Virus record (IMG/VR): IMGVR_UViG_3300037882_003354
Coordinates: 258,513 to 322,512 of that record
DNA length: 64,000 bases
Direction: 5' to 3' (one strand)
Translations under genes and position numbers: made by a program
Notes under the pieces: generated by a model
Databases searched by the model: none
What the model was told of the DNA's origin: nothing
The model's input: only the letters and a program-made list of their open reading frames with translations
Shown: positions 1 to 51,014 of the stretch, one piece after another
How the letters are laid out: each line of letters begins with the position of its first letter
Position numbering within the stretch: position 1 is the first letter of the stretch

Positions 1-411
1 TAGATTCTTCATCTTGGCATGCGCCAGCAAGTCAGGATAGGCCCGTTGCCAACCCAGCAAGGGCTCACCGCCTGTGATCACCAGGTGCTCATCACGCCAT
101 TCGCCGAACGGTAAAATTTCCATGATGCGGTCGGCGATGGCATCAGTGGTCAGCATGGGACTCAGATGTTTGAACTCCGGCATCCAGGAGGCGAAGGAGT
201 CGCATCCTGACTTGACCAAGGGCAGGTCGTTGTATGTTTTATAATCTGCGATCTTGATCGCATGACGCTCTTGACTGGCTTCACCTGGCAGCATGCCAAA
301 TCCGTCACAGGTAAAATTACAACCAAATGTTCTCAAGAACACGGAGGGAACGCCCATATAACGTCCCTCTCCCTGGATTGAATAGAATAATTCGCTTACT
401 TTAATCTTCAT
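1..411 (-). CDS. queE: 7-carboxy-7-deazaguanine synthase QueE (radical SAM), runs off the left edge
   Basis: Not in the ORF track; manual translation from ATG at 411: MKIKVSELFYSIQGEGRYMGVPSVFLRTFGCNFTC...GCDSFASW...VITGGEPLL (SIQGEG, F-R--GC and TGGEP are QueE hallmarks). Confidence 0.9.
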   Translation of the reverse strand, partial: MKIKVSELFYSIQGEGRYMGVPSVFLRTFGCNFTCDGFGMLPGEASQERHAIKIADYKTYNDLPLVKSGCDSFASWMPEFKHLSPMLTTDAIADRIMEILPFGEWRDEHLVITGGEPLLGWQRAYPDLLAHAKMKNL

Positions 412-33677: not shown

Positions 33678-36600
33678 TCAGGAGAACTTTTTCTTAAACT
33701 CTTCAAATTCTTTGCTGAGTTCCTTGATGGCCTCCACCAACAAAGGCACCACCTTCTCGTACTGAATGGTCCGGTAGTTCTCACCTGACTTGCTGTCACC
33801 GTTTTCATCACTATCAAACGGAGCCAACTTGACTGCCTCCGGCAATACAGCTTCCAATTCGTCGGCAAATAATCCAACTATGGATTCATCAGTGGAGAAC
33901 CCCAGCTGTTCAGCCAATTGATTGGGAGTGTACCGGATGCCAGTCAGGGCCCTGACCTTGGTCACAGCATCAGTAATCACACAAACATTGGTTTTCAATC
34001 TACGATCTGAAAAGAATGCTGTGATGTCACCCGTAGTTGTCAAAGCACCACTAAATTCATGACATTTTGCAACATACGGAATAGTACCTTCATCGATTGT
34101 GGCTGCGTTAGTTCCGACAAATCCAATGTAGCCCTGTCTTACTCCACCGCTGTGCGGGAAAAATTCAACATATCCAGACTTTGCACTAGTGCCAGTGCGT
34201 AGAGTTAAGAATCCGTTAGTTGTGCCAACCTGCGTGGTCAGCAATGTGGCATTTAGTGTGCCAGCAGTGCCAGACGCAGCAGCACCAATTCCCACGCTGG
34301 TAAATTGCAGGCTGCTGGTGCTGTTGATGCACAATATGCCAGTGCTGTCCACCCGGATGCGCTCTGCAGTACCAGCGCCAATCAACACAGTGCTTGACAA
34401 TCCATTCGAACCAATTAATGCACCAATGACAGTGTTATTGATACCAGTGGTTATTGCACAACCAGCACAGTATCCAATGCCAATATTGCGGGATCCGATG
34501 GTATTACTCACGAGCGCATTCCATCCAACGGCAGTGTTGTCAACCCCACTGGTGTTGGCGTTCAAGGCACAGGCACCTATTGCTGTGTTTGTAATACCAG
34601 TGATGTTGCACTGGAGTGCATAACTACCCACTGCGGTGTTTAAGCCACCATTTGTGTTTCTAAAGAGCGTATCGTTGCCAACGGCTGTGTTGCATCCGCC
34701 ACCGGTATTCTGCACAAGCGCACCAACTCCCAGGCCTGTATTGTAGCAGCCGACAATGTTGCATTTGAGTGTACCATACCCAATGGCCACGTTATTAACA
34801 CCGCCAGAGTTGCAGTAGAGTGCACCGACACCTTGTGCGGTGTTTCCACAGCCGTTAATGTTGAAGTATAGTGCACAAGCGCCAATAGCTGTATTGTTGT
34901 TGCCATATCCAGAGGGGCCAGGGCTGTTGTTGGAGAAAAGCGCATTATGACCCACGGCAGTGTTGTAGCTGTTTTCTATGGCGTTTGATAGCGCACCAGT
35001 GCCCACAGCCAAGTTGCCCCAGCCGGTGGTGTTGGCAGCCATGGCAAGGGCACCTATGGCCACATTGCCGTCGGTAGTGTTTTGCCTAAGCGCAAAACAA
35101 CCTATTGCGATATTACTGCAACCGATAATATTGTTAGAAAGTGCATTATATCCCACTGCAAAGTTGTTGTTGCCAATAGTATTTTTACCCAGTGAACTGG
35201 TGCCCTGTGCAAAGTTATTGCAACCAGTGGTGTTGTTGACCAGTGCATGGCATCCAGCTGCAAAATTATAGCAACCAGTCTGTGTCTTGTTACCGGCACA
35301 GCAACCTATGCCCACGTTGCCCAGTCCAGTGGTGTAGCCGAACACTGATCCCAGGCTGGTGGGAGTGGCCAGGGTGCTGGCGGCACTACTACCCACATAT
35401 CCTGCCGCTGACGAACCAGTGTAACCTGTACTTCCGATGTATCCAGGATCACCCCTGGAGCCCACCCATCCCACCGATCCAGTGTATCCCTGACTGCCCA
35501 CATAGCCACTACTGCCGGTGTAACCAATGCTGCCAGTGTATCCACGACTGCCAGTATATCCATTACTGCCGTTATAACCAACGTCACCCCGACTGCCGGT
35601 GTAACCCAGAACTCCCGATCCCGCATATCCAGTGGACGCTGATCCGGTGTAGCCAATGAGGCCACGACTGCCTGTGTATCCCAGCACACCCGATCCCACA
35701 TATCCCGTGGCAGCTGAGCCGGTGTAACCCACGCTGCCCTGGTATCCCACTCCTATGGAACCAGTGTATCCCAGTACAGCCGATCCCACATATCCAGCAC
35801 CGGCGGAGCCAGTATAACCCAGGCTACCACTATATCCAAATCCTGTGGAACCAGTGTAACCCAGACTGCCGGTGTATCCCTGTGTTCCTGAACCAGTGTA
35901 GCCAATGCCCTGCGAACCAGCATAACCCGCGCTGCCGCTGTATCCTATGCCCGACGAACCAGCATAACCGCGACTGCCAATGTAGCCAATGCTGCCAGTG
36001 TAACCAATTGATCCAGTGAAGCCAACACCCTGTGAACCAGCGTATCCTGAACTGCCAGTGTAACCTTGAGCGCCCGATCCTGTGTAGCCAACACCTTGTG
36101 AACCAGTGTAACCCTGGCTACCAGTGTAACCTTGGGCGCCCGATCCTGTGTACCCAAGCAGACCGCGACTGCCCACGTAGCCCACGCTGCCGGTGTAGCC
36201 CAGCACACTGGAACCGGAATATCCAATGCCCTGTGAACCGGTATATCCTGAACTGCCAGTGTAACCCTGTGGGCCCTGTACATTGCTTGCCGAGCCGGTG
36301 TATCCTATGCTGCCCACGTACCCTCGGCTGCCCGAGTAACCAGATGGTCCCACAATTTTACCAACATCAGAAAATCCTGACACATTACCCGGAGCAGTGG
36401 CATTGGAGTAGACCCATAAATTACCCGAATTCGCAGCAATATATCCATCGCCAATATTGATGGGACCAACGATGCTGGCGAACTGGCTGGTGGTGGCTTC
36501 AGTCACACTGCCCTTGATGTTGAGGCCAGAGCCCAGGGAACCAGTGTACCCAAAATCACCTCTAGAGCCACGACTGCCCACATATCCCGTGTCTCCCAGA

Positions 36601-39600
36601 CTGCCAGTATAACCAATGGATCCAGTATAACCTCGACTGCCGGTGTATCCCAGACTGCCGTCGTATCCTCTGCTGCCGGTATAACCCAGGGACCCAGTGT
36701 ATCCCTGTGGGCCTGACACTGTGCTGTTTGCACCTGAACTGCCAGCATACCCAATGCTGCCAACGTAACCAACTGATCCAGTATAGCCCAGGCTGCCGGT
36801 ATAGCCCAGGCTACCGGCATATCCTGAATCTCCGCGACTGCCAGTATAACCAATGGATCCGGTATAACCAATGCTACCGGTGTATCCTTGACTGCCCACA
36901 TACCCTCGACTGCCAGTGTATCCTTGACTGCCGGTATAACCAATTGACCCAGTGTAACCAGATGGTCCTACAATTACACCAACATCGATAAATCCTGACA
37001 CGTTACCTGGGGCACTGGAATTGGCATACACCCACAAGCGGCCAGTGTCTATTGCAATATATCCATCCCCCAGGGCAGGAGTACTTATGCTTGAAAGGTC
37101 TGACGACGTGAGCACGCTGCCCTTGATGTTAAGTCCAGTGCCAGCACTTCCGGTGTATCCAATACTACCGGTGTATCCTTGACTGCCAGTGTATCCTTGA
37201 CTGCCAGTATAGCCACGACTGCCAGTGTAGCCTATACTTCCAGTATACCCAATTGATCCTGTGTAACCAGTTGATCCCTGATATCCATTAACGCCCTGTG
37301 ATCCATCGTAACCAGCAGAACCAGTATAACCGCGGGATCCTGCATAGCCTGTGGATCCAACATAGCCAACAACGCCGGCGGTGTATGGTACTCCGTTGAT
37401 GCACAGGCCGTTGGCATCCACCTTGATACGCTCGCAAGTGCCAGCACCTATTAACACTGTGCATACACAGCCTGCACCAGCCTGCAACTGACCGATCACT
37501 GTGTTGCTGTGTCCAGTGGTTATGGCACATCCTGCACAAAACCCAATGCCAATGTTGTCGCTGGAAGTTGCACTGGCCAAGGAGTTGACACCGATGGCAA
37601 TATTGCAGTTGCCTGTACTGGAAACACCCAGACTGCCGAATCCCATGCTGATGTTGTCACAACCAGTGATGTTATAAATCAGCGCATTGCAACCCAGGGC
37701 AATATTGCTGTTGCCGAATTCGTTAAAAAATAATGAATTATATCCCATGGCAATATTATTATTGCCAGTGGTGTTACTGTTCAAGGATTGGTAACCCACT
37801 GCAAAGTTATCACAGCCAGTGGTGTTGCCTTGAAGTGCGCTGCCCCCAACGGCCGTGTTGCGTGTGCCCAGCGTGTTTCCGTAGAGAGCTCTGTGTCCAA
37901 TGGCTGTGTTATAACAACCATTGGTGTTGCTATAGAGTGCATATGCACCCTGAGCTGTGTTATTGCAACCAGTGGTATTGTTGTGAAGTGCACTGTAACC
38001 TTGTGCCACGTTATAACAACCGGTGGTATTGCTGAGGAGTGCACTACTGCCCTGAGCAGTATTATAACCACCAAGGGTGTTGTTTTGTAGTGAATTGGCA
38101 CCCTGGGCTGTGTTGAAGCAGCCAGTGGTGTTAGTAATCAGTGCAGCAGCACCTTGAGCTGTATTGTAGCAGCCAGAGGTATTACTATAGAGTACATTGT
38201 TACCCTGACCTGTGTTACCGCAGCCAGTGGTATTACTGTAAAGCGCAGAATAACCCTGGGCTGAGTTGTTACAACCGGTGGTATTACTATAGAGTGCATT
38301 AAAACCCAGAGCTGTGTTGCTGCTGCCCAGTGTGCTGCTGCGTAGTGCTTGGTGTCCGATGGCCGTGTTGTTGATGCCAGAGGTGCTGGATTTTAATGCT
38401 TCTGATCCAATGGCTATATTATAGCCGCCCACAGTATTGGTCACCAGTGCACACAGACCAATGGCTATGTTGTCAGTTCCTGTCTGTGTGGTATTACCCG
38501 AGCAGTAGCCCACGCTGATGTTGCCCAGGTTTGACGTGGTATAAGCATACACTGTGCCCAGTGATGTTGGCGTTGCAGGGCTAGTACTACCGGCACTGAA
38601 TAATGCACCGTTTTGATAAAGGTTGCCATTAAAATGTATGTCACAGCCAACCCCCAGGCCACCCACAATGGTCACGGCACCAGTGATGGTGGAAATGGCA
38701 TTGGCAGTAGACAGCACATTGACATTGGTGGCTGTGGCCGTGAATATGGGAGTACCCAGCGACCTTACAGCCAGGGTTCCTTCAGAGTTGATCAGGTCCA
38801 CACTCTGGCTGGTGCTGTTTTGTATGCTGATGCCCGCAGTATTTGATCCCTTGTTCTTGAAAAGTGCACTGGCAGTAAAACTGGGGAATGTCTGTGCGCT
38901 GTTGATTTCAAAGGTGGATTGATTGCCTGCATATACACCGCCACCCAGCCCCAGCCCGCCAACAACGATCACAGCACCAGTGGTTGTTGATGTGGCAATA
39001 GTGGAACTGGTGACTGCAATTTTGGGCATGGTCAGTATGCCACTGCTGGCCACGTAACTTAGGCCACTGTTGGCACCCAGGCTGAGATAATCTCCCACAG
39101 CCGAAGCCATGGTGGGATAATATACTGTGGAACTGGTATTGGTTATATTATTGACAAAAATCCTGTCGGCCTGGCCGGAAGTAACTGATCCAAAGATGCT
39201 GGAAGTACTAACCCAGGTGGCAGTGGTGCCCTGTGATTGCAACAAATAACCAGCTGTGCCTATGGGAATGAACGCAGTGGTGCTGTTTCCAGTCTGTATG
39301 GGTATGGAGCCAGTGGCGCCGCCCACCAGATTGACTGCAGAATTCACCTGCGCGGGTGCTGACCCGGTGTACCCAATGAGTCCGCGACTGCCTGCATAAC
39401 CAATGCTTCCAGTATAACCCTGAGAACCCACATAACCACGGCTGCCAGTGTACCCAATGCTGCCTGAGTAACCCAGGCCGCTTGAGCCGGTGTAGCCAGT
39501 GCTGCCCAGATATCCACGACTGCCAGTATAGCCTATGCTGCCGGTGTAGCCCAGACTGCCGGCACTGCCATTATATCCTGTGTCTCCTCGACTGCCTGTA

Positions 39601-39797
39601 TACCCGATTAATCCTCGAGATCCAATGTATCCCCTGGGGCCCTGGGGGCCCTGGGCGCCTTCAGTGCCCAGTATTGCTGCGGCTCTCGCCACAGTCAGTG
39701 TCAATTCAGTGCCGCCCTCCGTGACAATAAACAGCGTTTCCCCAACAGTGGGGCTGGTCAGTGGTATTAGAGATTCGAGTTCTTGACGGATGGGCAT
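33678..39797 (-). CDS. long tail fibre / adhesin with collagen-like and YadA-like repeats and C-terminal intramolecular chaperone (peptidase S74)
   Basis: (GYTGSx)n Gly-X-Y tracts, 14-residue NTAxGxxALxxNTTG repeats, SDRRLK auto-cleavage motif, YEKVVPLLVEAIKEL coil; ATAAATA at 39823-39829. Confidence 0.88.
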   Translation of the reverse strand: MPIRQELESLIPLTSPTVGETLFIVTEGGTELTLTVARAAAILGTEGAQGPQGPRGYIGSRGLIGYTGSRGDTGYNGSAGSLGYTGSIGYTGSRGYLGSTGYTGSSGLGYSGSIGYTGSRGYVGSQGYTGSIGYAGSRGLIGYTGSAPAQVNSAVNLVGGATGSIPIQTGNSTTAFIPIGTAGYLLQSQGTTATWVSTSSIFGSVTSGQADRIFVNNITNTSSTVYYPTMASAVGDYLSLGANSGLSYVASSGILTMPKIAVTSSTIATSTTTGAVIVVGGLGLGGGVYAGNQSTFEINSAQTFPSFTASALFKNKGSNTAGISIQNSTSQSVDLINSEGTLAVRSLGTPIFTATATNVNVLSTANAISTITGAVTIVGGLGVGCDIHFNGNLYQNGALFSAGSTSPATPTSLGTVYAYTTSNLGNISVGYCSGNTTQTGTDNIAIGLCALVTNTVGGYNIAIGSEALKSSTSGINNTAIGHQALRSSTLGSSNTALGFNALYSNTTGCNNSAQGYSALYSNTTGCGNTGQGNNVLYSNTSGCYNTAQGAAALITNTTGCFNTAQGANSLQNNTLGGYNTAQGSSALLSNTTGCYNVAQGYSALHNNTTGCNNTAQGAYALYSNTNGCYNTAIGHRALYGNTLGTRNTAVGGSALQGNTTGCDNFAVGYQSLNSNTTGNNNIAMGYNSLFFNEFGNSNIALGCNALIYNITGCDNISMGFGSLGVSSTGNCNIAIGVNSLASATSSDNIGIGFCAGCAITTGHSNTVIGQLQAGAGCVCTVLIGAGTCERIKVDANGLCINGVPYTAGVVGYVGSTGYAGSRGYTGSAGYDGSQGVNGYQGSTGYTGSIGYTGSIGYTGSRGYTGSQGYTGSQGYTGSIGYTGSAGTGLNIKGSVLTSSDLSSISTPALGDGYIAIDTGRLWVYANSSAPGNVSGFIDVGVIVGPSGYTGSIGYTGSQGYTGSRGYVGSQGYTGSIGYTGSIGYTGSRGDSGYAGSLGYTGSLGYTGSVGYVGSIGYAGSSGANSTVSGPQGYTGSLGYTGSRGYDGSLGYTGSRGYTGSIGYTGSLGDTGYVGSRGSRGDFGYTGSLGSGLNIKGSVTEATTSQFASIVGPINIGDGYIAANSGNLWVYSNATAPGNVSGFSDVGKIVGPSGYSGSRGYVGSIGYTGSASNVQGPQGYTGSSGYTGSQGIGYSGSSVLGYTGSVGYVGSRGLLGYTGSGAQGYTGSQGYTGSQGVGYTGSGAQGYTGSSGYAGSQGVGFTGSIGYTGSIGYIGSRGYAGSSGIGYSGSAGYAGSQGIGYTGSGTQGYTGSLGYTGSTGFGYSGSLGYTGSAGAGYVGSAVLGYTGSIGVGYQGSVGYTGSAATGYVGSGVLGYTGSRGLIGYTGSASTGYAGSGVLGYTGSRGDVGYNGSNGYTGSRGYTGSIGYTGSSGYVGSQGYTGSVGWVGSRGDPGYIGSTGYTGSSAAGYVGSSAASTLATPTSLGSVFGYTTGLGNVGIGCCAGNKTQTGCYNFAAGCHALVNNTTGCNNFAQGTSSLGKNTIGNNNFAVGYNALSNNIIGCSNIAIGCFALRQNTTDGNVAIGALAMAANTTGWGNLAVGTGALSNAIENSYNTAVGHNALFSNNSPGPSGYGNNNTAIGACALYFNINGCGNTAQGVGALYCNSGGVNNVAIGYGTLKCNIVGCYNTGLGVGALVQNTGGGCNTAVGNDTLFRNTNGGLNTAVGSYALQCNITGITNTAIGACALNANTSGVDNTAVGWNALVSNTIGSRNIGIGYCAGCAITTGINNTVIGALIGSNGLSSTVLIGAGTAERIRVDSTGILCINSTSSLQFTSVGIGAAASGTAGTLNATLLTTQVGTTNGFLTLRTGTSAKSGYVEFFPHSGGVRQGYIGFVGTNAATIDEGTIPYVAKCHEFSGALTTTGDITAFFSDRRLKTNVCVITDAVTKVRALTGIRYTPNQLAEQLGFSTDESIVGLFADELEAVLPEAVKLAPFDSDENGDSKSGENYRTIQYEKVVPLLVEAIKELSKEFEEFKKKFS
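35390..37370 (-). repeat. collagen-like GYTGSx coding repeats (about 18-bp unit) with a duplicated interrupting domain
   Basis: many imperfect CCAGTGTA/CCGGTGTA units; GLNIKGSV..GDGYIA..LWVY..APGNVSGF.DVG occurs twice; boundaries approximate. Confidence 0.85.
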
Positions 39798-39906
39798 TAT
39801 GTTAATTACCTGTTATAAAAGATATTTATCCGGGTGGACATGTGGCTGTATCACCAACATATTTAACATTTTCCAGTGTAAAATTTCACATTTATTGACG
39901 AATAGT

Positions 39907-39935
39907 TTGACTGCACTGGAATTTCGCCGTATAAT
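39907..39935 (+). promoter_or_regulatory. sigma70-type promoter
   Basis: TTGACT-17bp-TATAAT. Confidence 0.8.
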
Positions 39936-39975
39936 ATGCGTATCATACCAGGACAGCAGGGACAGAGTATTTTGC

Positions 39976-40052
39976 ACGGCCATACCGGAACGCTCTTCTA
40001 AAGCGTAGTACCGTAATTGGAGTCAATGTGGGTTCGAGTCCCGCTGGCCGTA
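39976..40052 (+). ncRNA. tRNA-like RNA with Arg(UCU) anticodon arm, no D-arm and expanded variable region
   Basis: acceptor ACGGCCA/TGGCCGT, anticodon arm ACGCT-CTTCTAA-AGCGT, T-arm GTGGG-TTCGAGT-CCCGC; only 7 nt where the D-arm should be. Confidence 0.7.
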
Positions 40053-40097
40053 CAAAATACTTTCGAACAGCTGAATCAACACAATAACCAACAAATC

Positions 40098-40877
40098 ATG
40101 AGTAGAAAACTAACCATCATAACTAGAACATGCGGCAGAGTATTTGCCATTCACGGAAGCCGATACATTGACCGAACCAAGGCCGAAATTATCAACACCT
40201 GCCTCAGCAGTCTGGTCCACAGCATCAACCGGGTGCAAGGACATGAGATTGAGTTGTATGTGCTGGACGATCACAGTGACGATGCTGTGACGGCAGACAT
40301 CAAGACCATATTGTCCAAGTGCAAATTTCCCACAGAGTTCATACCAGTTGTGGACGGCACTGGCGCCAGCCACACCTGTTTCAAGGTGTACGACCTGGTG
40401 GAAAAACACGCCACTGACCTCTGGTTGCACGTGGAGGATGATTATCTGCACGTGCCCGAATCCATTCAGGACATGATTGACACGGTGGATCACTTGGAGG
40501 TCAATACTGGACGAATGATTGCCATCAATCCACACGATGATCCGCACCGCTACTCCAGCCAAATTTATGAAAGCATCCTGCTGTACGGCCCCGAGCGGCA
40601 TTATCGCACGGTCAAACACAGCACATACACCTGCCTGGCCAGTCGTGCCATTTACGACACCTATCGAGATCTCTTCCAGGAATCGGCAGAGTGGATACTC
40701 AGACGTGGTGAAGACGAGCACATCAATCGGGTGTGGAGCAAGCCTGATGTCATGATGTTCAGCCCCATACCCAGTGTGGCCCTGCATTTGGCAGACGAAA
40801 TGAGTCGAGATCCTTACCTGGACATTGACCAACTATGGAACAGTGTGCCTGAACTCTGGAGGACGGATCATGAGTAA
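40098..40877 (+). CDS. GT-A (GT2-like) glycosyltransferase
   Basis: LYVLDDHS, HVEDDYLH. Confidence 0.75.
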   Translation: MSRKLTIITRTCGRVFAIHGSRYIDRTKAEIINTCLSSLVHSINRVQGHEIELYVLDDHSDDAVTADIKTILSKCKFPTEFIPVVDGTGASHTCFKVYDLVEKHATDLWLHVEDDYLHVPESIQDMIDTVDHLEVNTGRMIAINPHDDPHRYSSQIYESILLYGPERHYRTVKHSTYTCLASRAIYDTYRDLFQESAEWILRRGEDEHINRVWSKPDVMMFSPIPSVALHLADEMSRDPYLDIDQLWNSVPELWRTDHE

Positions 40878-41694
40878 TCGAACATTTCTTCATGCTGGCA
40901 CTTTTGGCGACACCATTTATGCCCTGAATGTCATCAAGTTACTGGGCGGCGGCGATCTTTACATCGAATTAAATGGCATGGATGCTCTGGCACGGAAAAT
41001 GTGGGGCGGTGGTGATGCAGGGGATCACAGAGGCAGATACACTCAACAAGACATTGATTTTATCCTGCCCTTGCTTGAAAAACAAAGTTACATCAACCAG
41101 GTGAAGATCTGGAACGGGGAACACATAGACCATGATCTCAGGGATCACTATAAATTTTGGGCCAAGAGGGAGGGAAAAATAGAAAACTGGATGGGCAACC
41201 AAACAGAAACCTATGCAATCGCCTGCGGCTTGGACATACACCAGCACAGACAGGACCTCTTGATCAATCCCTGGTTGGACAACATTGATCCGGTGTCAAT
41301 TCCAGGTAAACCCATCATTCTCAATCGCACACATCGACACATCAGACGCGACACTTTCAACATGCAGTTGACTAATGATCAATGTGATCACTGGATCAAG
41401 GAAGACAGTTTGCTGGACATGGCGGTGTTTGTGGGCGCTCCACAGGAGCATGCAGAATTTTGTGAACAATATGCATGTGATATCCAATACCGACCAGTGA
41501 CTGACATGCTGGAAATGGCGCAGCTGATAAAAGGATCCGAACAGTTTATCGGAAACCAGAGCATGGCATTGAGCCTGGCCATAGCACTGGGTAAAACTTT
41601 TTGGTGTGAAATTCGGGTGGATTACGAAGATATAAAAACACCACACGGATATGGCGACGTCTGGTTCCCCAGGGCCAATGGTCATTATTTTTAA
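40870..41694 (+). CDS. GT9-like (heptosyltransferase-like) glycosyltransferase
   Basis: GTFGDTI near N-terminus; LEMAQLIKGSEQFIGNQS..LAIALGK. Confidence 0.65.
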   Translation: MSNRTFLHAGTFGDTIYALNVIKLLGGGDLYIELNGMDALARKMWGGGDAGDHRGRYTQQDIDFILPLLEKQSYINQVKIWNGEHIDHDLRDHYKFWAKREGKIENWMGNQTETYAIACGLDIHQHRQDLLINPWLDNIDPVSIPGKPIILNRTHRHIRRDTFNMQLTNDQCDHWIKEDSLLDMAVFVGAPQEHAEFCEQYACDIQYRPVTDMLEMAQLIKGSEQFIGNQSMALSLAIALGKTFWCEIRVDYEDIKTPHGYGDVWFPRANGHYF

Positions 41695-41717
41695 CAGTGA
41701 TTGATAAAAGGATTAAC

Positions 41718-42560
41718 ATGAGCAAGAATTTAGTTTTAGGAGCCGCTTTCGGCTATGGCGTGGAAAAAGTCAAACCATTCGTTCTGTCACTGCGCAGACA
41801 CTATGATGGTATCATTGTGTTTGTGGTTGAGCATGTGACTGATGAATTGGCTGAATTTTATCAGGAGCATGACATTTACACCTGTGTGCCCGAAGGTCCA
41901 GTCAATCGCGGATATGCCAATGTTGATAGATTCAGGTATTATCTGGACTGCCTGGAAAACTTTGACGACATTGACAACGTCATGCTGACCGACATTCGTG
42001 ATGTGGTGTTTCAAAGCAATCCATTTGATCACTATCCCAAACACGATATTGAATTATTTGCTGAACCGGAAGTGTTTGGCAAGTGCAATCATAATGGTCC
42101 TTGGTATTCAGGATTATACGGTGCACAGCAGCTGGACAAGATCAAAGATGAATACGTGCTGTGTGCTGGCACCACCCTGGGCAAGTTTGACACCATGGTG
42201 CAATACATCACAGTTTTGATTGAAGAAATTGCCAAGTTGGAACAGGCAGGCCTGGCACATGGCACCTGCGATCAGGCTGTGCACAATCACATTGTTTATA
42301 CCGGAAGGTTTTCTGATTACCGAATCAATCATAACGGTCAAGGCCTGGTGGCCACCATGCACCATAGCAAGACACTGACATTCGATCGACAGGGACGCAT
42401 GTTAAATCATGACGGCTCGCCCACACCAGTGGTGCATCAATATGATCGGTGTGGTGCCATGAGTGTGGTTTTTCTTAAAAACGCGCTGGGGCTGACAGGC
42501 AAGGGCATTCGAACAGCCGCGGAGTATGCCGCAAATAATTTTTTCGAACATGATTTGTAA
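41718..42560 (+). CDS. putative GT-A glycosyltransferase
   Basis: TDIRDVVFQSNPF, CAGT, DQAVHN, VVHQYDR. Confidence 0.6.
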   Translation: MSKNLVLGAAFGYGVEKVKPFVLSLRRHYDGIIVFVVEHVTDELAEFYQEHDIYTCVPEGPVNRGYANVDRFRYYLDCLENFDDIDNVMLTDIRDVVFQSNPFDHYPKHDIELFAEPEVFGKCNHNGPWYSGLYGAQQLDKIKDEYVLCAGTTLGKFDTMVQYITVLIEEIAKLEQAGLAHGTCDQAVHNHIVYTGRFSDYRINHNGQGLVATMHHSKTLTFDRQGRMLNHDGSPTPVVHQYDRCGAMSVVFLKNALGLTGKGIRTAAEYAANNFFEHDL

Positions 42561-43138
42561 TGATACATGTTATCGCCACATCAGCCAACATAGAAAATAA
42601 TTATGCTGTCAGGAAGCAGCAGTATCTAACCGGACTGTGTAGTATTATTTCAAATTATAAAATCAATCCTTACATCATAGAAACTTGCAGTCCAACAAAC
42701 TACCTAGCTGAACATTTTGTTGGACATAGCAATTACTCGGAAAACAAAGGAATTAGTGAATTTATCAATATCGATAACTTTTTTAAGAACACTGATTTAA
42801 AATTGGAAGATGACGATGTTATTATTAAAACTTCTCTGAGATACGAGATCGTCTCTCCACATTTACTAGATGTAATCAAATCTAATGATCACGAAGTATA
42901 CTGTAAATCTTCATCGGACATTTATGGACCTCAAGACACCGGTGTGCATTGTTTTTTATTTGCCATGAAATATAAATGTTGGAAAAACTTTTTAAATACA
43001 TTCGATAGACATGTGCACCGTGATCAACCCATAGAGGGTCAATTGGCAGATTACTTCAAAAAAACAGATACTAAATATCTGGATAAACTGGGCATACTAG
43101 CAAATCCAGCCAATCATAACAAAATTTACACAGTATAA
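42560..43138 (+). CDS. hypothetical protein (glycosylation island)
   Basis: AT-rich ORF, NKG.SE, IIKTSLRY. Confidence 0.65.
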   Translation: MIHVIATSANIENNYAVRKQQYLTGLCSIISNYKINPYIIETCSPTNYLAEHFVGHSNYSENKGISEFINIDNFFKNTDLKLEDDDVIIKTSLRYEIVSPHLLDVIKSNDHEVYCKSSSDIYGPQDTGVHCFLFAMKYKCWKNFLNTFDRHVHRDQPIEGQLADYFKKTDTKYLDKLGILANPANHNKIYTV

Positions 43139-43146
43139 AGGCAAAC

Positions 43147-43686
43147 ATGTCACATCAAGCACAAATAGATTATTGTCTCTGGGTAAAGAACAAATTCCCA
43201 GAATTTTTTAAAAACACACGAGTGGTTGATTTCGGGTCCTTGGACATCAACGGCAGCAACCGGCGTTTCTTTGACAATTGTGAGTACACTGGTTTAGACA
43301 TTGGTGCTGGCAACAATGTGGACATTGTCACCAGGGCACACGAATATCATGCCCCGGATGCACACTACGATGTGGTGGTTTCTACAGAAATGTTTGAACA
43401 TGACAAATACCTGCATCTCAGTCTGCCCAACATGGTCAGGGTACTGAGACCCGGCGGCCTGTTTTTCTGGACATGTGCAACCACAGGCAGGCATGAGCAT
43501 GGGACTAGGAGAACAGAACCTTCTGCATCTCCGTTCACATCGCAAGCAGACGATGGCTGGGATGACTTCTACGAAAATGTAGACCAAGCCAAGGTCAGAC
43601 AAATATTAGACATCGATGCTCTGTTCAGCGAGTATGCATTTGATGTTCTGGGATATGACATCAGATTTTATGGAATAAAAAAATAA
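43147..43686 (+). CDS. class I SAM-dependent methyltransferase
   Basis: VVDFGSLDING, YTGLD, EMFEHD, LRPGG. Confidence 0.88.
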   Translation: MSHQAQIDYCLWVKNKFPEFFKNTRVVDFGSLDINGSNRRFFDNCEYTGLDIGAGNNVDIVTRAHEYHAPDAHYDVVVSTEMFEHDKYLHLSLPNMVRVLRPGGLFFWTCATTGRHEHGTRRTEPSASPFTSQADDGWDDFYENVDQAKVRQILDIDALFSEYAFDVLGYDIRFYGIKK

Positions 43687-43763: not shown

Positions 43764-43836
43764 TCTCCAGTAGCTCAGCGGTAGTAGCATTTGACTGTTA
43801 ATCAAAGGGTCCGTGGTTCGATCCCACGCTGGAGAG
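43764..43836 (+). tRNA. tRNA-Asn(GTT), CCA not encoded
   Basis: TCTCCAG/CTGGAGA acceptor, TTTGA-CTGTTAA-TCAAA, TTCGATC T-loop. Confidence 0.92.
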
Positions 43837-43854
43837 CATAACACATTAATTCAT

Positions 43855-43930
43855 GGGCTGTGATTGAGCTGGGGTTCTTGGCTGCTTTGCAAGCAGTTAT
43901 CGGTGGGTTCGATTCCCACACGGTCCACCA
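43855..43930 (+). tRNA. tRNA-Ala(TGC)
   Basis: loop TTTGCAA, G3:U70 pair, CCA end. Confidence 0.85.
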
Positions 43931-43940
43931 AAATGATAAA

Positions 43941-44028
43941 GGAAGATTGGCAGAGTGGCCGATTGCGTCAGTCTTGAAAACTGAAGACCCCAACGGGTCC
44001 GTGAGTTCGAATCTCACATCTTCCTCCA
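43941..44028 (+). tRNA. tRNA-Ser(TGA)
   Basis: TCAGT-CTTGAAA-ACTGA, long variable arm, CCA. Confidence 0.93.
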
Positions 44029-44030
44029 AG

Positions 44031-44059
44031 TTGACATGAGCAGCGACCGGCTGTACAAT
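44031..44059 (+). promoter_or_regulatory. sigma70-type promoter
   Basis: TTGACA-17bp-TACAAT before tRNA-Lys. Confidence 0.75.
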
Positions 44060-44067
44060 CAGATCAT

Positions 44068-44143
44068 GGGACGATAGCTCAGTTGGTAGAGCAGTAGACT
44101 TTTAATTTATTGGCCGTGGGATCGTGCCCCACTCGTCCCACCA
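44068..44143 (+). tRNA. tRNA-Lys(TTT)
   Basis: GGGACGA/TCGTCCC, loop CTTTTAA, atypical T-loop ATCGTGC, CCA. Confidence 0.88.
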
Positions 44144-44254
44144 TATTAAAACACATTCAACGGCAACCGGGATACCTAGCAACTGGACGCAGGGGCTATC
44201 CAAATAGTAGGGCACTACAGCCGAAAGCTAGGACTAGAGTGTGTTTCCATATGG
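44141..44254 (+). ncRNA. unknown structured RNA 1
   Basis: closing helix CCATAT..AAACACATT / AGTGTGTTT..ATATGG, inner CCTAGC/GCTAGG helix and several small hairpins; no ORF. Confidence 0.6.
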
Positions 44255-44498
44255 TGGATTAATTGTGTTGTCATGGAAAATGGCTGTGTTCACCAGCCCA
44301 GTGTTAAGAGATCAATTGGGGGAGTGCCGGCTTCGATCATGATCATAGATCATGGTTCAACCCAATCTCAACGGAGACGACGAATCCTGGACCACACAGT
44401 CCGGGCAATAAGCGTCCGGGGAAAGAAAAAATATTTCCATCCCACAAACGACAGCAGGGCGATTGCTGTTCATAATATGACAACACAATTAATCCACC
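44253..44498 (+). ncRNA. unknown structured RNA 2, bounded by a perfect 22-bp inverted repeat
   Basis: GGTGGATTAATTGTGTTGTCAT (44253-44274) / ATGACAACACAATTAATCCACC (44477-44498); interior made of hairpins. Confidence 0.65.
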
Positions 44499-44541
44499 TG
44501 GCAAGATACACGTTATAAATACACGTGAAGAACAATGAACT

Positions 44542-44629
44542 GGATAGTTGGCCGAGTGGTTAAGGCAACGGTTTGCTAAACCGTCGCTCCGAAAGGGGCG
44601 CATAGGTTCGAATCCTATACTATCCGCCA
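44542..44629 (+). tRNA. tRNA-Ser(GCT)
   Basis: ACGGT-TTGCTAA-ACCGT, long variable arm, G73, CCA; TATAAATA at 44514-44521 upstream. Confidence 0.93.
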
Positions 44630-44639
44630 AATTTATCCT

Positions 44640-44715
44640 GGGTCCTTAACTCAGCCGGTAGAGTGTCTGCCTTAAAGGCAGAATGTCGTCAGTTCGAACC
44701 TGGCAGGACCCACCA
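44640..44715 (+). tRNA. tRNA with TAA anticodon (Leu) and short variable loop
   Basis: GGGTCCT/AGGACCC, TCTGC-CTTAAAG-GCAGA, 5-nt variable loop, CCA. Confidence 0.8.
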
Positions 44716-44721
44716 ACACAT

Positions 44722-44803
44722 GCATCAGTGTCAGATTGGGAATGAAGCGGTCTGCAAAACCGCTCCGAAAGGGAAGTAGGTTCGATTCCTACCTGATGCT
44801 CCA
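44722..44803 (+). tRNA. tRNA-Cys(GCA) with extra variable arm
   Basis: GCATCAG/CTGATGC, U73, GCGGT-CTGCAAA-ACCGC, small GAAA-capped variable arm. Confidence 0.85.
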
Positions 44804-44826
44804 ATTAATTTTACCACTTGCCACTG

Positions 44827-44855
44827 TTGACGCATAACTAAGATATGTATACACT
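44827..44855 (+). promoter_or_regulatory. sigma70-type promoter
   Basis: TTGACG-17bp-TACACT. Confidence 0.65.
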
Positions 44856-44861
44856 TTATTC

Positions 44862-44972
44862 ACGGTTGTGAGTGGAATTGGCAGACCTCCAAAAGAATCG
44901 TTGTATGATTTGAGGGATGGGGCAGAGTTATAAACATCGCCTTTGTAGGTTCGAGACCTACCAACCGTACCA
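44862..44972 (+). ncRNA. 111-nt tRNA-like RNA with an expanded, non-canonical anticodon region
   Basis: ACGGTTG/CAACCGT-A-CCA, Leu-like D-loop GGAATTGGCAGAC, T-arm GTAGG-TTCGAGA-CCTAC, no 7-nt anticodon loop. Confidence 0.7.
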
Positions 44973-45015
44973 AAAATAAAAATAATAATAATAACAATAA
45001 CAACATATATCATTT

Positions 45016-45837
45016 ATGATCATAGATTGCTTTACATTTTTTAACGAGCTGGATGTGCTGGAGGGTAGATTGGAATATCTGTATGACACAGTGGATTATT
45101 TTGTCATTGTGGAAGCCGATATAACACACAGTGGTGCTGCCAAGCCCATGCAATATGCAGAAAACATGCGTCGGTACCACAAGTATTCAAAGAAAATATT
45201 GTACATGCCCGTGTCCATTGATCCCAGTCAGTACAATCTTGATTACCGGCCTGCGACATTTGAACCCACTGCACCACAATGGAGTGTGGAAAATCTGCAA
45301 AGGAATCACATAGCCAAGGCCTTGGCGCTGTTTCCTGATGATGCCATGGTGGGCATAAGTGATGCGGATGAAATCCCCAGCAAATCAGCCATTGAACTGG
45401 CCAAGTACATCCTGGGTTCTGAAACAGAGGCCTGCTGTCTGGAGCAAGAGATGTTTTATTATAATTTCCGCCAGCAGGCCACCATTGGATGGATACCTGG
45501 TGCCCTGGTCACCAACCGATTTGCCAAGCAAGTGTCTCCGCAGGGAGTTAGAAATCAAGCCATGTGGGGTCAGTTAACTCGAATTCCACAGGGTGGCTGG
45601 CACCTGAGCTATTGGGGATCGCCTGAAGACATTTCGTATAAAATTAAAAATTTTGCACATCAAGAACTAAACAATGCTGAATTCACTAACATTGATAACA
45701 TTCAACAACGTATAGCAACAGGGCGAGACCCGTTCGACCGTGCACCTATGGTGCATGTGGATCCCATGAGTTTGCCCAAATTGCCACACGAAGTGGTTGG
45801 TATTTTTGGCAAAGATTTTAAAAATTTTACACGCTGA
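45016..45837 (+). CDS. GT17-like glycosyltransferase
   Basis: DCFTFFNELD, VDYFVIVEA..THSG..KP, ENLQRN, SDADEIP, GWHLSY, KIKNFAHQE. Confidence 0.85.
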   Translation: MIIDCFTFFNELDVLEGRLEYLYDTVDYFVIVEADITHSGAAKPMQYAENMRRYHKYSKKILYMPVSIDPSQYNLDYRPATFEPTAPQWSVENLQRNHIAKALALFPDDAMVGISDADEIPSKSAIELAKYILGSETEACCLEQEMFYYNFRQQATIGWIPGALVTNRFAKQVSPQGVRNQAMWGQLTRIPQGGWHLSYWGSPEDISYKIKNFAHQELNNAEFTNIDNIQQRIATGRDPFDRAPMVHVDPMSLPKLPHEVVGIFGKDFKNFTR

Positions 45838-45856
45838 CACCTGGAGTAATTAACAC

Positions 45857-47509
45857 ATGATCATAGATTGCTTTACATTTTTTAACGAACTTGATCTGCT
45901 GGAAGGCAGGTTGGAATATCTGTATGATACAGTGGATTATTTTGTCATTGTGGAAGCTGATGTAACACACAGTGGCCAACCTAAACCACTCAACTATCTG
46001 GAAAATATTGCAAGGTATCACAAATTTTCTGATAAAATTCTGTACTTTCCAGTGCACATTGATGTCAGCGCATACGATTGGAGTGTCAAACATGCTGCAG
46101 ATGACCTAACATCACCACACTGGCAAGTGGAAAACCTGCAGCGCAATCACATAGCCACAGCGTTGAAATTATTTGATCCACAAGCATGGATCATGATTGG
46201 AGATCTGGATGAAATACCCAACCGTGATGTGATCCAGTATGCAATATCATGTGTAAATGACACCCAGCCCATGTGTACTTTCAGGCAGGACATGTTCTAT
46301 TATAATTTCAATCAAAAGCAAATTGGCTCCTGGCCGGGCACAGTGGTGACCACCAATCAATACGTGATTAATCATGGCCCACAACAGATCAGAATGTGGC
46401 GATGGGGCTTTGGAGTCACGTGCGGCTGGCACCTGAGCTACTGGGGTTCACCAGAAAAGATTAAACTTAAACTGGAAAATTTTGCACATCATGAATATAA
46501 CACAAGTGAGTTTACTGATGTGGATAAAATAGCAGAACGAATTAAAGCAGGCAAGGATATATTTGATCGTGGTGATCACTGCCGATGTATTCCAGTGGAT
46601 CGATCTTCACTGCCTGCAGATTTATTGAGAGTATTCGGAAAATACGAAATTATAAATGTTGATAACACAGTCCACCAACCTAAGAATTTAGTGCTGGGAA
46701 TTGCACTGGGCTACGGTGTGGACGAAATAAAGAATTTTATTTTAAGTTTTAGGGCGTACAACCAACGGGATTGCATCAACCTGATCATGGACCAGTCCAC
46801 ACTGGATAAAACCCAGAATTTTTTAAAGTCACAAAATGTGGACATCACGTTGTTTGATCTGCATGATGCAATGGGCACCACACCAGTGAACAATCTCAGA
46901 TTTGAACAATATGGAAAGATTATCACTCAGGGAACATATAAAAATATTTTATCAACTGACATTCGGGATGTGATATTCCAGAAAGATCCCTTTGTAAACC
47001 TGCCCGACCATCCCTACCTGTACTTGTTTCAAGAAGACAGTGGTGTCCCCATTGGTGAAGAAGTATACAATTCATTGTGGATAAAAAATGCATATGGTGA
47101 TCAAATACTAGATCAAATAAAAGATCAATTGGTCATCTGCGTGGGCACAGTCATGGCCAGCGCACCAAAGATGTTGGAGTATGTGGATTTCGTCACTGCT
47201 GAATTAAAAAAATTCAAGGAAAGATCCCCGGATGTCTGGAGAGCCCATGCGTTTGAACAGGCGCCGGGCATGTATTTGGGTTATGCAAAAGAACAAAAGA
47301 TTCAGGGCCTGGAAATAAAACCCAGCGGACACATTGTGGGCACCATAGGACTGTCCCTGACACACCACCTGGCCCGTGATCAAATAGAAGGTCGAGGGGA
47401 CGGATTCGTCTACGTGAACGGTCTAGTGCCGGAGATAATCCACCAATATGACCGACACAAAGAGCTGGTGGCATTCTTCAATCAGAAATACAGCATGCCT
47501 GAGTCCTAA
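45857..47509 (+). CDS. GT17-like domain fused to a second GT-like domain (paralog of 41718..42560)
   Basis: N-terminal half as for 45016; C-terminal KNLVLG..GYGV, TDIRDVIFQKDPF, IIHQYDR. Confidence 0.82.
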   Translation: MIIDCFTFFNELDLLEGRLEYLYDTVDYFVIVEADVTHSGQPKPLNYLENIARYHKFSDKILYFPVHIDVSAYDWSVKHAADDLTSPHWQVENLQRNHIATALKLFDPQAWIMIGDLDEIPNRDVIQYAISCVNDTQPMCTFRQDMFYYNFNQKQIGSWPGTVVTTNQYVINHGPQQIRMWRWGFGVTCGWHLSYWGSPEKIKLKLENFAHHEYNTSEFTDVDKIAERIKAGKDIFDRGDHCRCIPVDRSSLPADLLRVFGKYEIINVDNTVHQPKNLVLGIALGYGVDEIKNFILSFRAYNQRDCINLIMDQSTLDKTQNFLKSQNVDITLFDLHDAMGTTPVNNLRFEQYGKIITQGTYKNILSTDIRDVIFQKDPFVNLPDHPYLYLFQEDSGVPIGEEVYNSLWIKNAYGDQILDQIKDQLVICVGTVMASAPKMLEYVDFVTAELKKFKERSPDVWRAHAFEQAPGMYLGYAKEQKIQGLEIKPSGHIVGTIGLSLTHHLARDQIEGRGDGFVYVNGLVPEIIHQYDRHKELVAFFNQKYSMPES

Positions 47510-47567
47510 CATGCAGTTGACTGTTCAGTTGACCATGTAGTATACTATCATTTACAAAGGAAAAACC

Positions 47568-47774
47568 ATGCCCAGACACTCATCACAACAAGCAGTAGAA
47601 GCCGTTGGCAATCGCTATGACCTGGTGCACATTGCCAGCATCCGAGCACGAGAATTGTCTCGTGGTGCCGCGCCCTTGATCCCCACCACCAACGGATTTC
47701 TAGTAACTGCACTAGCAGAAATCCAGGCTGGCGAGGTGGGTCGCGAATACCTGGATAAATTAAAACAACGGTAA
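47568..47774 (+). CDS. rpoZ: RNA polymerase omega subunit homolog
   Basis: AVEAVGNRYDLVHIASIRAREL...VTALAEIQAG; TTGACT-18bp-TATACT at 47517-47546. Confidence 0.88.
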   Translation: MPRHSSQQAVEAVGNRYDLVHIASIRARELSRGAAPLIPTTNGFLVTALAEIQAGEVGREYLDKLKQR

Positions 47775-47784
47775 AAAAATAATT

Positions 47785-47869
47785 GGGAATGTGGCGTAAT
47801 TGGTAGCCGCACCAGATTTAGGTTCTGGCGCCGAAAGGTGTGTGAGTTCGAGTCTCACCATTCCCACCA
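47785..47869 (+). tRNA. tRNA-Leu(TAG)
   Basis: CCAGA-TTTAGGT-TCTGG, long variable arm, CCA. Confidence 0.93.
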
Positions 47870-47892
47870 AAAATAACAAAAGGCGATACAAC

Positions 47893-48135
47893 ATGGAAAT
47901 AACACAACTAGAAATGGCATACACAGATCTGATCACAGATGCCAGTCCCGCCACCTTGCACATGGCAAATCGCGTGCGTGATATACTCATGCAGCATGCG
48001 CCAGGCAACATGGACTCACTGGGCATGTTGACTGCACTGGATCCAGTGAGCCAGATTGAATTTCTGCCCAAAAGAGAACAAATGAAAAAATATATGAATT
48101 TGGTTTCTATTGCCATCAGGGACACAGCACCATGA
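47893..48135 (+). CDS. hypothetical protein
   Basis: ATG 47893 after the tRNA, AGG upstream. Confidence 0.6.
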   Translation: MEITQLEMAYTDLITDASPATLHMANRVRDILMQHAPGNMDSLGMLTALDPVSQIEFLPKREQMKKYMNLVSIAIRDTAP

Positions 48136-48389
48136 CCAACCTGATAAAAGAAACACTGGAAAACGGCGACGTCTACGAATTTGATCTGGACGTATGCAAC
48201 GCAGCGGCTGATCAGGCGCTGGAAGAACTCTTGGAAAAAGAGGGCGAGGTGGAAAACTTTGACTTTGTGGCCAGCGTCTTCAGCTTGTTTGTGGCCAGCA
48301 TCAGCATCCTGACTCAGTCGGGTTGGACCACGGATGAGTTGATCAACGAAGTCATGGCCAGCACAGAACATACGGACACACAACATTAA
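48132..48389 (+). CDS. small acidic hypothetical protein
   Basis: very D/E-rich 85 aa. Confidence 0.7.
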   Translation: MTNLIKETLENGDVYEFDLDVCNAAADQALEELLEKEGEVENFDFVASVFSLFVASISILTQSGWTTDELINEVMASTEHTDTQH

Positions 48390-48403
48390 CACAAGGAAAT
48401 CAA

Positions 48404-48586
48404 ATGAGCCACGGTGGAAAAGGCAGTAGAGCAAGACCCTACAGCGTGACCAATGACGAGTATTCTCGACGGTGGGACGCCATCTTTGGTCGCGACCTGG
48501 ATAAAAAGACCCCGCCTGAAGAACCCACGCCGCCTGAAGTCGCTCCTGTGGAAAATGACACACACCCAATGCCCGCTGATAAGTAA
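48404..48586 (+). CDS. hypothetical protein
   Basis: GGKGSRARP...WDAIFG; AAGGA RBS. Confidence 0.7.
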   Translation: MSHGGKGSRARPYSVTNDEYSRRWDAIFGRDLDKKTPPEEPTPPEVAPVENDTHPMPADK

Positions 48587-48628
48587 TCATTGACACTGTA
48601 TAAGAAATTTGTTATAATAATAAAATAC

Positions 48629-48711
48629 GCTGGAGTCGCATAGTGGCAATTGCAACGGTTTTGTAAGCCGTCGGGAAACCTCCGTGAGTTCGAGTCTCAC
48701 CTTCAGCACCA
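48629..48711 (+). tRNA. tRNA-Thr(TGT) with extra variable arm
   Basis: G1:C72, C2:G71, ACGGT-TTTGTAA-GCCGT, GG-GAAA-CC variable stem; TTGACA-17bp-TATAAT at 48590-48618. Confidence 0.85.
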
Positions 48712-48733
48712 ATCGACATATAAAGTACATGGA

Positions 48734-48809
48734 GCGGCGTTAGCTCAGTTGGTAGAGCGCGATCCTTCCACGTTCGAGGTCATCGGTTCGAGCCCGATAC
48801 GCCGCTCCA
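48734..48809 (+). tRNA. tRNA-Gly(TCC)
   Basis: GCGGCGT/ACGCCGC, U73, loop CTTCCAC, CCA. Confidence 0.9.
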
Positions 48810-50899: not shown

Positions 50900-50976
50900 G
50901 GGACGGCAGCTTGAGCATGAGGAGCACGGGTCTCATAAACCCGAGGTAATGGGTGCGAATCCCATACGTCCTACCA
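50900..50976 (+). tRNA. tRNA(CAT), probably tRNA-Ile2 (lysidine substrate)
   Basis: CGGGT-CTCATAA-ACCCG, A73, CCA; next to tilS; atypical T-loop TGCGAAT; TTGACA-17bp-TATACT at 50840-50868. Confidence 0.78.
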
Positions 50977-50982
50977 GTACCC

Positions 50983-51014
50983 TGCCCGGCTATTGACAAG
51001 TAGCCGGGCATTTT
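50983..51014 (+). terminator. intrinsic terminator
   Basis: TGCCCGGCTA/TAGCCGGGCA stem plus TTTT. Confidence 0.75.

Follow-up and report, generated by a model that had tools for sequence, protein, structure and literature searches.

A conserved phage gene for an arginine tRNA with a rearranged core, predicted from comparative sequence analysis

A gene at positions 39976-40052 (+) of a 64-kb stretch of a phage genome encodes a conserved RNA with the features of a tRNA-Arg in which the pieces of the D arm are joined in a different order from that in the textbook cloverleaf, and the gene is also present, mostly unannotated, in hundreds of cultured phages including Felix O1. In canonical numbering, and as inferred from the textbook tRNA fold, segments 10-21 and 22-45 have changed places. 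That the gene family and its permuted helix are real and under selection is close to certain. Based on comparative evidence, and in the absence of direct evidence for a mature RNA, for charging or for decoding, we suggest with a probability of about 0.8 that the RNA is a working, host-charged tRNA-Arg that reads AGA and probably AGG for the phage.

Identification of the gene and its relatives

The window, i.e. the whole stretch of 64,000 nucleotides analysed here, is the last 64 kb of a complete 322.5-kb phage genome with direct terminal repeats and 48% G+C; related DNA occurs in freshwater and lake metagenomes from 13 studies. The initial annotation described a D-armless tRNA-Arg(UCU)-like RNA with a D-loop-like sequence displaced into the variable region, and the sequence was confirmed base for base. 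The acceptor stem (ACGGCCA/TGGCCGT), the anticodon arm (stem ACGCT/AGCGT) and the T arm are canonical, only the 7 nt TACCGGA at 39983-39989 are present where the D arm should be, and the 21-nt stretch at 40007-40027 before the T arm holds CCGTAATTGG, including the D-loop-like UAAUUGGAG. However, the RNA is not truly D-armless, because a covarying 3-bp D-stem equivalent exists with its two strands on opposite sides of the anticodon arm. The features are as follows, with the equivalences to canonical positions being inferred.

39907-39935 (+), sigma-70-type promoter match: TTGACT at 39907-39912, a 17-nt spacer and TATAAT at 39930-39935 (11 of 12 consensus positions); the predicted start is about 39942, leaving a leader of roughly 33 nt
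39976-40052 (+), whole gene from the first acceptor base to the discriminator; CAA at 40053-40055 follows instead of CCA
39976-39982 (+), acceptor stem, 5' strand, pairing with 40045-40051
39983-39985 (+), U8, A9 and an unpaired C (position-22 equivalent); U and A are invariant in 158 sequences and the third base is C, U or A
39986-39988 (+), CGG, the strand of the long-range helix leading into the anticodon stem (equivalent of the D-stem 3' strand, positions 23-25)
39989 (+), A, the position-26 equivalent between the D-like helix and the anticodon stem; A in 74 of 87 sequences of subtypes I and II
39990-40006 (+), anticodon arm with a 5-bp stem and loop CTTCTAA at 39995-40001 (U33, C35, U36 and A37), anticodon TCT at 39997-39999
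40007-40010 (+), AGTA linker (equivalents of positions 44-45 plus a 2-nt bulge); AGNN in most members, 3-8 nt in other subtypes
40011-40013 (+), CCG, second strand of the long-range helix (equivalent of the D-stem 5' strand, positions 10-12)
40014-40022 (+), D-loop equivalent TAATTGGAG: U13, A14, A15, a variable 1-2 nt, G18 G19, A20 and one more base
40023-40027 (+), TCAAT joint from the D-loop equivalent to the T stem, the final A-U being read as A21 and U48
40028-40044 (+), T arm with a 5-bp stem and loop TTCGAGT
40045-40052 (+), acceptor stem 3' strand and discriminator A73 (A at 40052)

To determine whether the sequence is recognised as a tRNA, we searched the window with the Rfam tRNA model (RF00005), which matched exactly 39976-40052 at 40.6 bits (gathering score 29, E 3.8e-5 for the window) in an alignment that deletes the whole D arm. 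By contrast, ARAGORN found ten other tRNAs in the window but not this one, and found only 1 of 102 copies among the family loci. Thus, the suggestion in the initial annotation that standard scanners would miss the gene is half right. A second odd tRNA at 50901-50972 (+) was also missed by ARAGORN and scored 29.3 bits with the Rfam model, just over the threshold; it has anticodon loop CUCAUAA (CAU), an imperfect acceptor stem, T loop UGCGAAU and an encoded CCA, and is followed by a hairpin at about 50982-51008. ARAGORN also calls a permuted (two-piece) tmRNA with tag peptide AANDDAYLMAA outside the window in the same jumbo phage (G000:C1:45244-45616).

Because the folding energy of the single sequence is unremarkable (z = -1.38), the case that the gene is more than chance rests on its homologues. 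A megablast search against cultured phages gave one hit, Limnohabitans phage DC31, in which the 59-nt core is 95% identical while the acceptor and T stems are different and still paired, and the gene ends in CCA. We then scanned IMG/VR (8 scans), JGI metagenomes and GTDB genomes with patterns that fixed only short single-stranded motifs and left the stems free; in five scans the whole anticodon arm was also left free. Moreover, a covariance model was built from five sequences, deliberately without the helix in question. This model scored family members at 46-105 bits (105.3 bits for the window copy) and ordinary tRNAs in the same loci at 38 bits or less. In total, 158 distinct sequences from phage, metagenome and isolate genomes were recovered, and these fall into three subtypes that differ in the linker after the anticodon stem (3-8 nt) and in the joint before the T stem (UCAAU, UCAU or UAU, with a constant terminal AU). 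Because retrieval was by pattern, family size and motif conservation are biased whereas the covariation is not, and the counts are of sequences and not of events.

A long-range helix and the inferred core topology

To determine how the 21-nt stretch is folded, we examined base pairing across the family. The three bases before the anticodon stem (CGG in the window) covary with three bases after it (CCG), the combinations found being CGG:CCG, CUC:GAG, CAC:GUG, CGC:GCG, CAG:CUG, CAU:AUG, CCC:GGG, CGU:ACG, CGA:UCG, CCU:AGG and CUU:AAG. All 158 sequences can form three Watson-Crick pairs, although one of them needs a one-base shift of register. In the 72-sequence alignment (71 distinct rows), this helix (columns 11-13 with 36-38) is 100% paired with 43 and 31 double-sided changes in its two variable pairs, and all 17 pairs of the acceptor, anticodon and T stems also show double-sided changes with 99% or more of cells paired. 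All 20 pairs of the four-helix structure are 99.4% paired compared to 67% in column shuffles (0 of 500 reach the observed value) and 37-47% when the partners are slid. RNAalifold predicts the same helix unaided. Moreover, 19 of 96 acceptor-stem variants occur with two or three different helix types, so the compensatory switches happened repeatedly.

These observations bear on two alternative readings. A decaying pseudogene or chance tRNA-like sequence might be suggested by the missing D arm in the cloverleaf alignment, the lack of CCA, the silence of ARAGORN and the ordinary folding z-score; however, this is contradicted by the 158 distinct homologues in unrelated phage lineages with compensatory changes in every helix and an invariant tertiary-type core. 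Similarly, a working tRNA-Arg with a different fold, i.e. truly D-armless with a class-II-like hairpin (CCG-UAAU-UGG) in the variable region or with a small AUUG/CAAU hairpin, is very unlikely. Both local hairpins can be drawn in the window copy, and its minimum-energy fold includes AUUG/CAAU. However, across the family the first hairpin (40011-40013 with 40018-40020), which competes with the long-range helix, is only 67% paired with no double-sided change, and the second has two invariant pairs and two that are often broken or gapped.

In a canonical tRNA, the D stem stacks on the anticodon stem; one strand of that stack is continuous (22-25, 26, 27-31) while the other is nicked between 44-45 and 10. 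By reasoning from this textbook structure, we infer that the nick is sealed here, with the chain running from the anticodon stem 3' strand through A, G and a 2-nt bulge into the strand equivalent to 10-12, and that the D hairpin is opened instead at the 21/22 junction. The chain would therefore run U8, A9, 22-26, the anticodon arm, 44-45, 10-13, A14, A15, one or two variable bases, G18 G19, A20 and a short joint ending in A21 and U48 into the T stem. The D stem would be a direct extension of the anticodon helix across a small internal loop, and the three new joints (9 to 22, 45 to 10, and 21 to 48) would each link residues that already lie next to each other in the L-shaped fold. A tandem duplication followed by two deletions would produce this order. 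The bases of the U8:A14 pair, the A15:U48 Levitt pair and the G18G19 elbow are all present, the T loop is UUCRANY in all members, and the length variation of the D-loop equivalent lies where canonical D loops vary. The UAA, the GG and the following A are invariant; these bases cannot provide covariation evidence and part of their invariance was imposed by the search patterns, and the tertiary contacts and the L shape are inferred.

Arginine identity, genomic role and distribution

Every one of the 158 sequences has an arginine anticodon (UCU 149, ACG 4, UCG 3, CCU 2), and none of the five scans in which the anticodon was left free returned a non-arginine anticodon. The bacterial arginine identity set is A20, C35, U/G36 and A/G73, with U73 also listed for bacteria and A20 as the main determinant for E. 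coli ArgRS (PMC9976931). All members have C35 and U or G at 36, and the discriminator is G in 46, A in 33 and U in 8 of 87 sequences. An A follows the GG in every member; however, its equivalence to A20 is a positional inference and the search patterns required that A. CCA is encoded in 67 of 87 sequences; the CAA in the window is one of several variants, and tRNA-Asn of the same phage also lacks CCA. Two divergent, low-scoring members (L281:1557-1636 and L307:12519-12598 among the family loci, which are numbered L001 onwards) have anticodon loops CCUCUAA and CCUCUAC, i.e. C instead of the near-universal U at position 33.

The phage has 11 other tRNAs but no other tRNA-Arg, although AGA and AGG make up 18.8% and 10.5% of its Arg codons, and no ArgRS or CCA-adding enzyme of its own was found. 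Elsewhere, 47 of 102 copies lie within 300 nt of another tRNA, and only 2 of the roughly 330 other tRNAs in those loci are canonical Arg(UCU). The two architectures are not strictly exclusive, since an activated-sludge phage contig (L205:5232-5310, 5411-5483 and 6497-6576) carries a permuted tRNA-Arg(ACG), a permuted tRNA-Arg(UCU), and canonical tRNA-Arg(UCU) and (CCU) genes within 1.4 kb. We infer that the RNA is transcribed from its own strong promoter as the first element of an operon, cut out by RNase P and 3' trimming, completed by the host CCA-adding enzyme, charged by host ArgRS through A20, C35, U36 and A73, and used for the many AGA/AGG codons of the phage.

The same type of promoter lies 9 nt upstream of the tRNA in some relatives (L003, L004, L005). 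Among Logan contigs, one metatranscriptome contig spans 39961-40306, from just after the predicted start through the tRNA into the next ORF; this contig shows no ends or strand and could derive from DNA. A related strain's DNA contig, with 34 differences over 1948 nt, gives only a hint of stronger constraint in the 314 nt (39889-40202) covering the promoter, the tRNA and the start of the next ORF. Five ORFs at 40098-43686 (+) lie between the permuted tRNA and the main tRNA cluster (43764-48809); four have no Pfam match and the last is a class I SAM methyltransferase. No terminator separates them from the tRNA, and they may form one transcription unit. Divergently from the promoter region, 33678-39797 (-) encodes a 2039-aa protein with seven collagen-repeat stretches and a C-terminal S74 intramolecular-chaperone domain, probably a tail fibre. 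No link between these neighbouring proteins and the tRNA emerged.

The position between a promoter and the first ORF without a terminator, together with the RNA-library contig, could indicate a cis-acting leader structure, e.g. an attenuator, a processing signal or a tRNA-like 5' UTR, that serves the downstream operon. We consider this very unlikely because in other phages the RNA sits in tRNA clusters, behind HNH genes or in front of unrelated genes; moreover, co-transcription of tRNAs with mRNAs is common and does not exclude tRNA function. HNH homing-endonuclease genes lie directly beside the permuted tRNA in several unrelated phages (DC31, L001:2708-2992; PAK_P2, L318:1586-1951; Felix O1, L327:1204-1596), and in Felix O1 the annotated HNH CDS start overlaps the last 30 nt of the tRNA; this could bear on how the gene spreads, or the CDS start may be mis-called. 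In DC31, about 300 nt of non-coding DNA of unknown function lies downstream of the tRNA (L001:3075-3385), and its first 50 nt are conserved in an IMG/VR relative (L006, about 190-235, minus strand).

The initial annotation proposed either a topologically rearranged functional tRNA or a decoy for anticodon nucleases, and the comparative evidence supports the former. A pure decoy or sponge, which would mimic the anticodon arm and elbow of tRNA-Arg to soak up a host anticodon nuclease or another tRNA-targeting defence, cannot be excluded without biochemistry but has no specific support and is unlikely. The core is unusually conserved between unrelated phages, as in the window and DC31, some copies have strong private promoters, and phage tRNAs have been proposed to counter tRNA-cleaving enzymes including colicin D, which targets tRNA-Arg (PMC10264068). 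However, a decoy would not need a covarying 7-bp acceptor stem, an encoded CCA, a discriminator within the ArgRS set or the inferred A20 equivalent, the anticodons drift only among arginine anticodons, as expected if charging identity is under selection, the RNA is the only tRNA-Arg in an AGA-rich phage, and no nuclease partner is known. More speculatively, and although no selective reason for the odd topology is known, the permuted core might be an adaptation that keeps the surfaces read by RNase P, ArgRS, EF-Tu and the ribosome while removing the canonical D hairpin and variable loop recognised by some host factor, such as a tRNA-Arg-directed nuclease of the colicin D kind, another tRNA-targeting defence, or a modification or quality-control enzyme. 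Phage arginine decoding would then survive when host tRNA-Arg is attacked, and the RNA would be a natural, transferable, partly orthogonal tRNA scaffold and a new type of counter-defence.

To determine where else the gene occurs, we searched 50,697 cultured-phage records by BLAST with family members. Copies were found in Limnohabitans phage DC31, Agrobacterium phage Atu_ph04, 14 Pseudomonas phage records (PAK_P2, JG003, phiPsa397, five P. putida phages and others) and 264 records of Escherichia, Salmonella and Klebsiella phages and their relatives, including Felixounavirus, Justusliebigvirus, Mydovirus KB57 and the jumbo Asteriusvirus group; rV5-like phages and BASEL-collection coliphages are among the carriers. 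By contrast, the ACG subtype gave no match. The matched region is almost always without an annotated feature, with one record giving "tRNA" without a product and one "tRNA-OTHER", and in these genomes it lies in a gap of the annotated tRNA cluster. Felix O1 has an unannotated copy at NC_005282.1 25951-26032 (52.6 bits). The Felix O1 genome paper lists 22 tRNAs found by tRNAscan-SE, reports AGA among the over-represented codons and remarks that a tRNA for it "might have been expected" but was not found (PMC3185647); the gene described here is the likely answer. Thus, phage tRNA inventories are systematically undercounted by ARAGORN and by older tRNAscan-SE runs. Finally, a pattern scan of 185,579 GTDB species genomes, covering the main subtype (subtype I) only, gave four true hits, all on MAG contigs that are probably phage, and the gene therefore appears to be phage-borne.

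Comparison with known tRNAs

tRNA is among the most conserved folds in biology, and the known natural exceptions are almost all mitochondrial. A review of non-canonical tRNAs mentions no phage or permuted case (PMC7609411), a 2024 paper states that all known bacterial tRNAs are canonical cloverleaves (PMC11551756), and we found no description of this topology in the literature searched, although this does not prove that it is unpublished. The family would be the first natural tRNA, working with ordinary bacterial translation machinery, in which the core strands are connected in a different order while apparently keeping the same three-dimensional contacts, and it offers tRNA engineers a natural permuted scaffold.

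Canonical bacterial and phage tRNA-Arg(UCU), e.g. E. coli argU and phage T4 tRNA-Arg, share with this RNA the 7-bp acceptor stem, the 5-bp anticodon stem with loop CUUCUAA, the 5-bp T stem with UUCRANY loop, discriminator A/G, CCA, U8, a D-loop-type UAAYGGA motif with A20 (inferred in the phage RNA) and the presumed job of reading AGA in phages richer in AGA than their hosts. Here, however, the two strands of the D stem flank the anticodon arm instead of forming a hairpin, the D loop is joined directly to the T stem and no separate variable loop crosses the core.

Metazoan mitochondrial D-armless tRNA-Ser(AGY/AGN), including tRNA-Ser(UCU) of nematodes, also lack a hairpin between the acceptor and anticodon stems and by coincidence also read AGN codons (PMC7609411, PMC4013460). 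However, these tRNAs have lost the D stem and the G18G19/T-loop elbow, have degenerate T arms and need adapted partner proteins, whereas the phage RNA keeps a covarying D-stem equivalent, GG, the inferred A20 and a textbook T arm, and must work with ordinary bacterial enzymes. In circularly permuted and split tRNA genes of Cyanidioschyzon merolae and some Archaea, the order of segments also differs from the canonical order, but the whole gene is permuted at the acceptor ends, and processing with ligation restores a canonical mature tRNA (PMC3978253, PMC3218864). Here, the acceptor strands lie at the two ends of the gene and covary with each other, no bulge-helix-bulge motif or splicing partner is evident, and the permutation would persist in the mature RNA.

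Class II tRNAs with long variable arms and allo-tRNAs similarly have more than 20 nt between the anticodon stem and the T stem (PMC7609411); in the phage RNA, that stretch is not a self-contained hairpin but pairs back to the 5' connector and carries D-loop features. Finally, engineered non-canonical-fold tRNAs evolved in E. coli address the same question of whether bacterial translation can use a tRNA that is not a cloverleaf (PMC11551756); those are constructs that needed host evolution, whereas the family described here is natural and widespread in phages of ordinary Proteobacteria.
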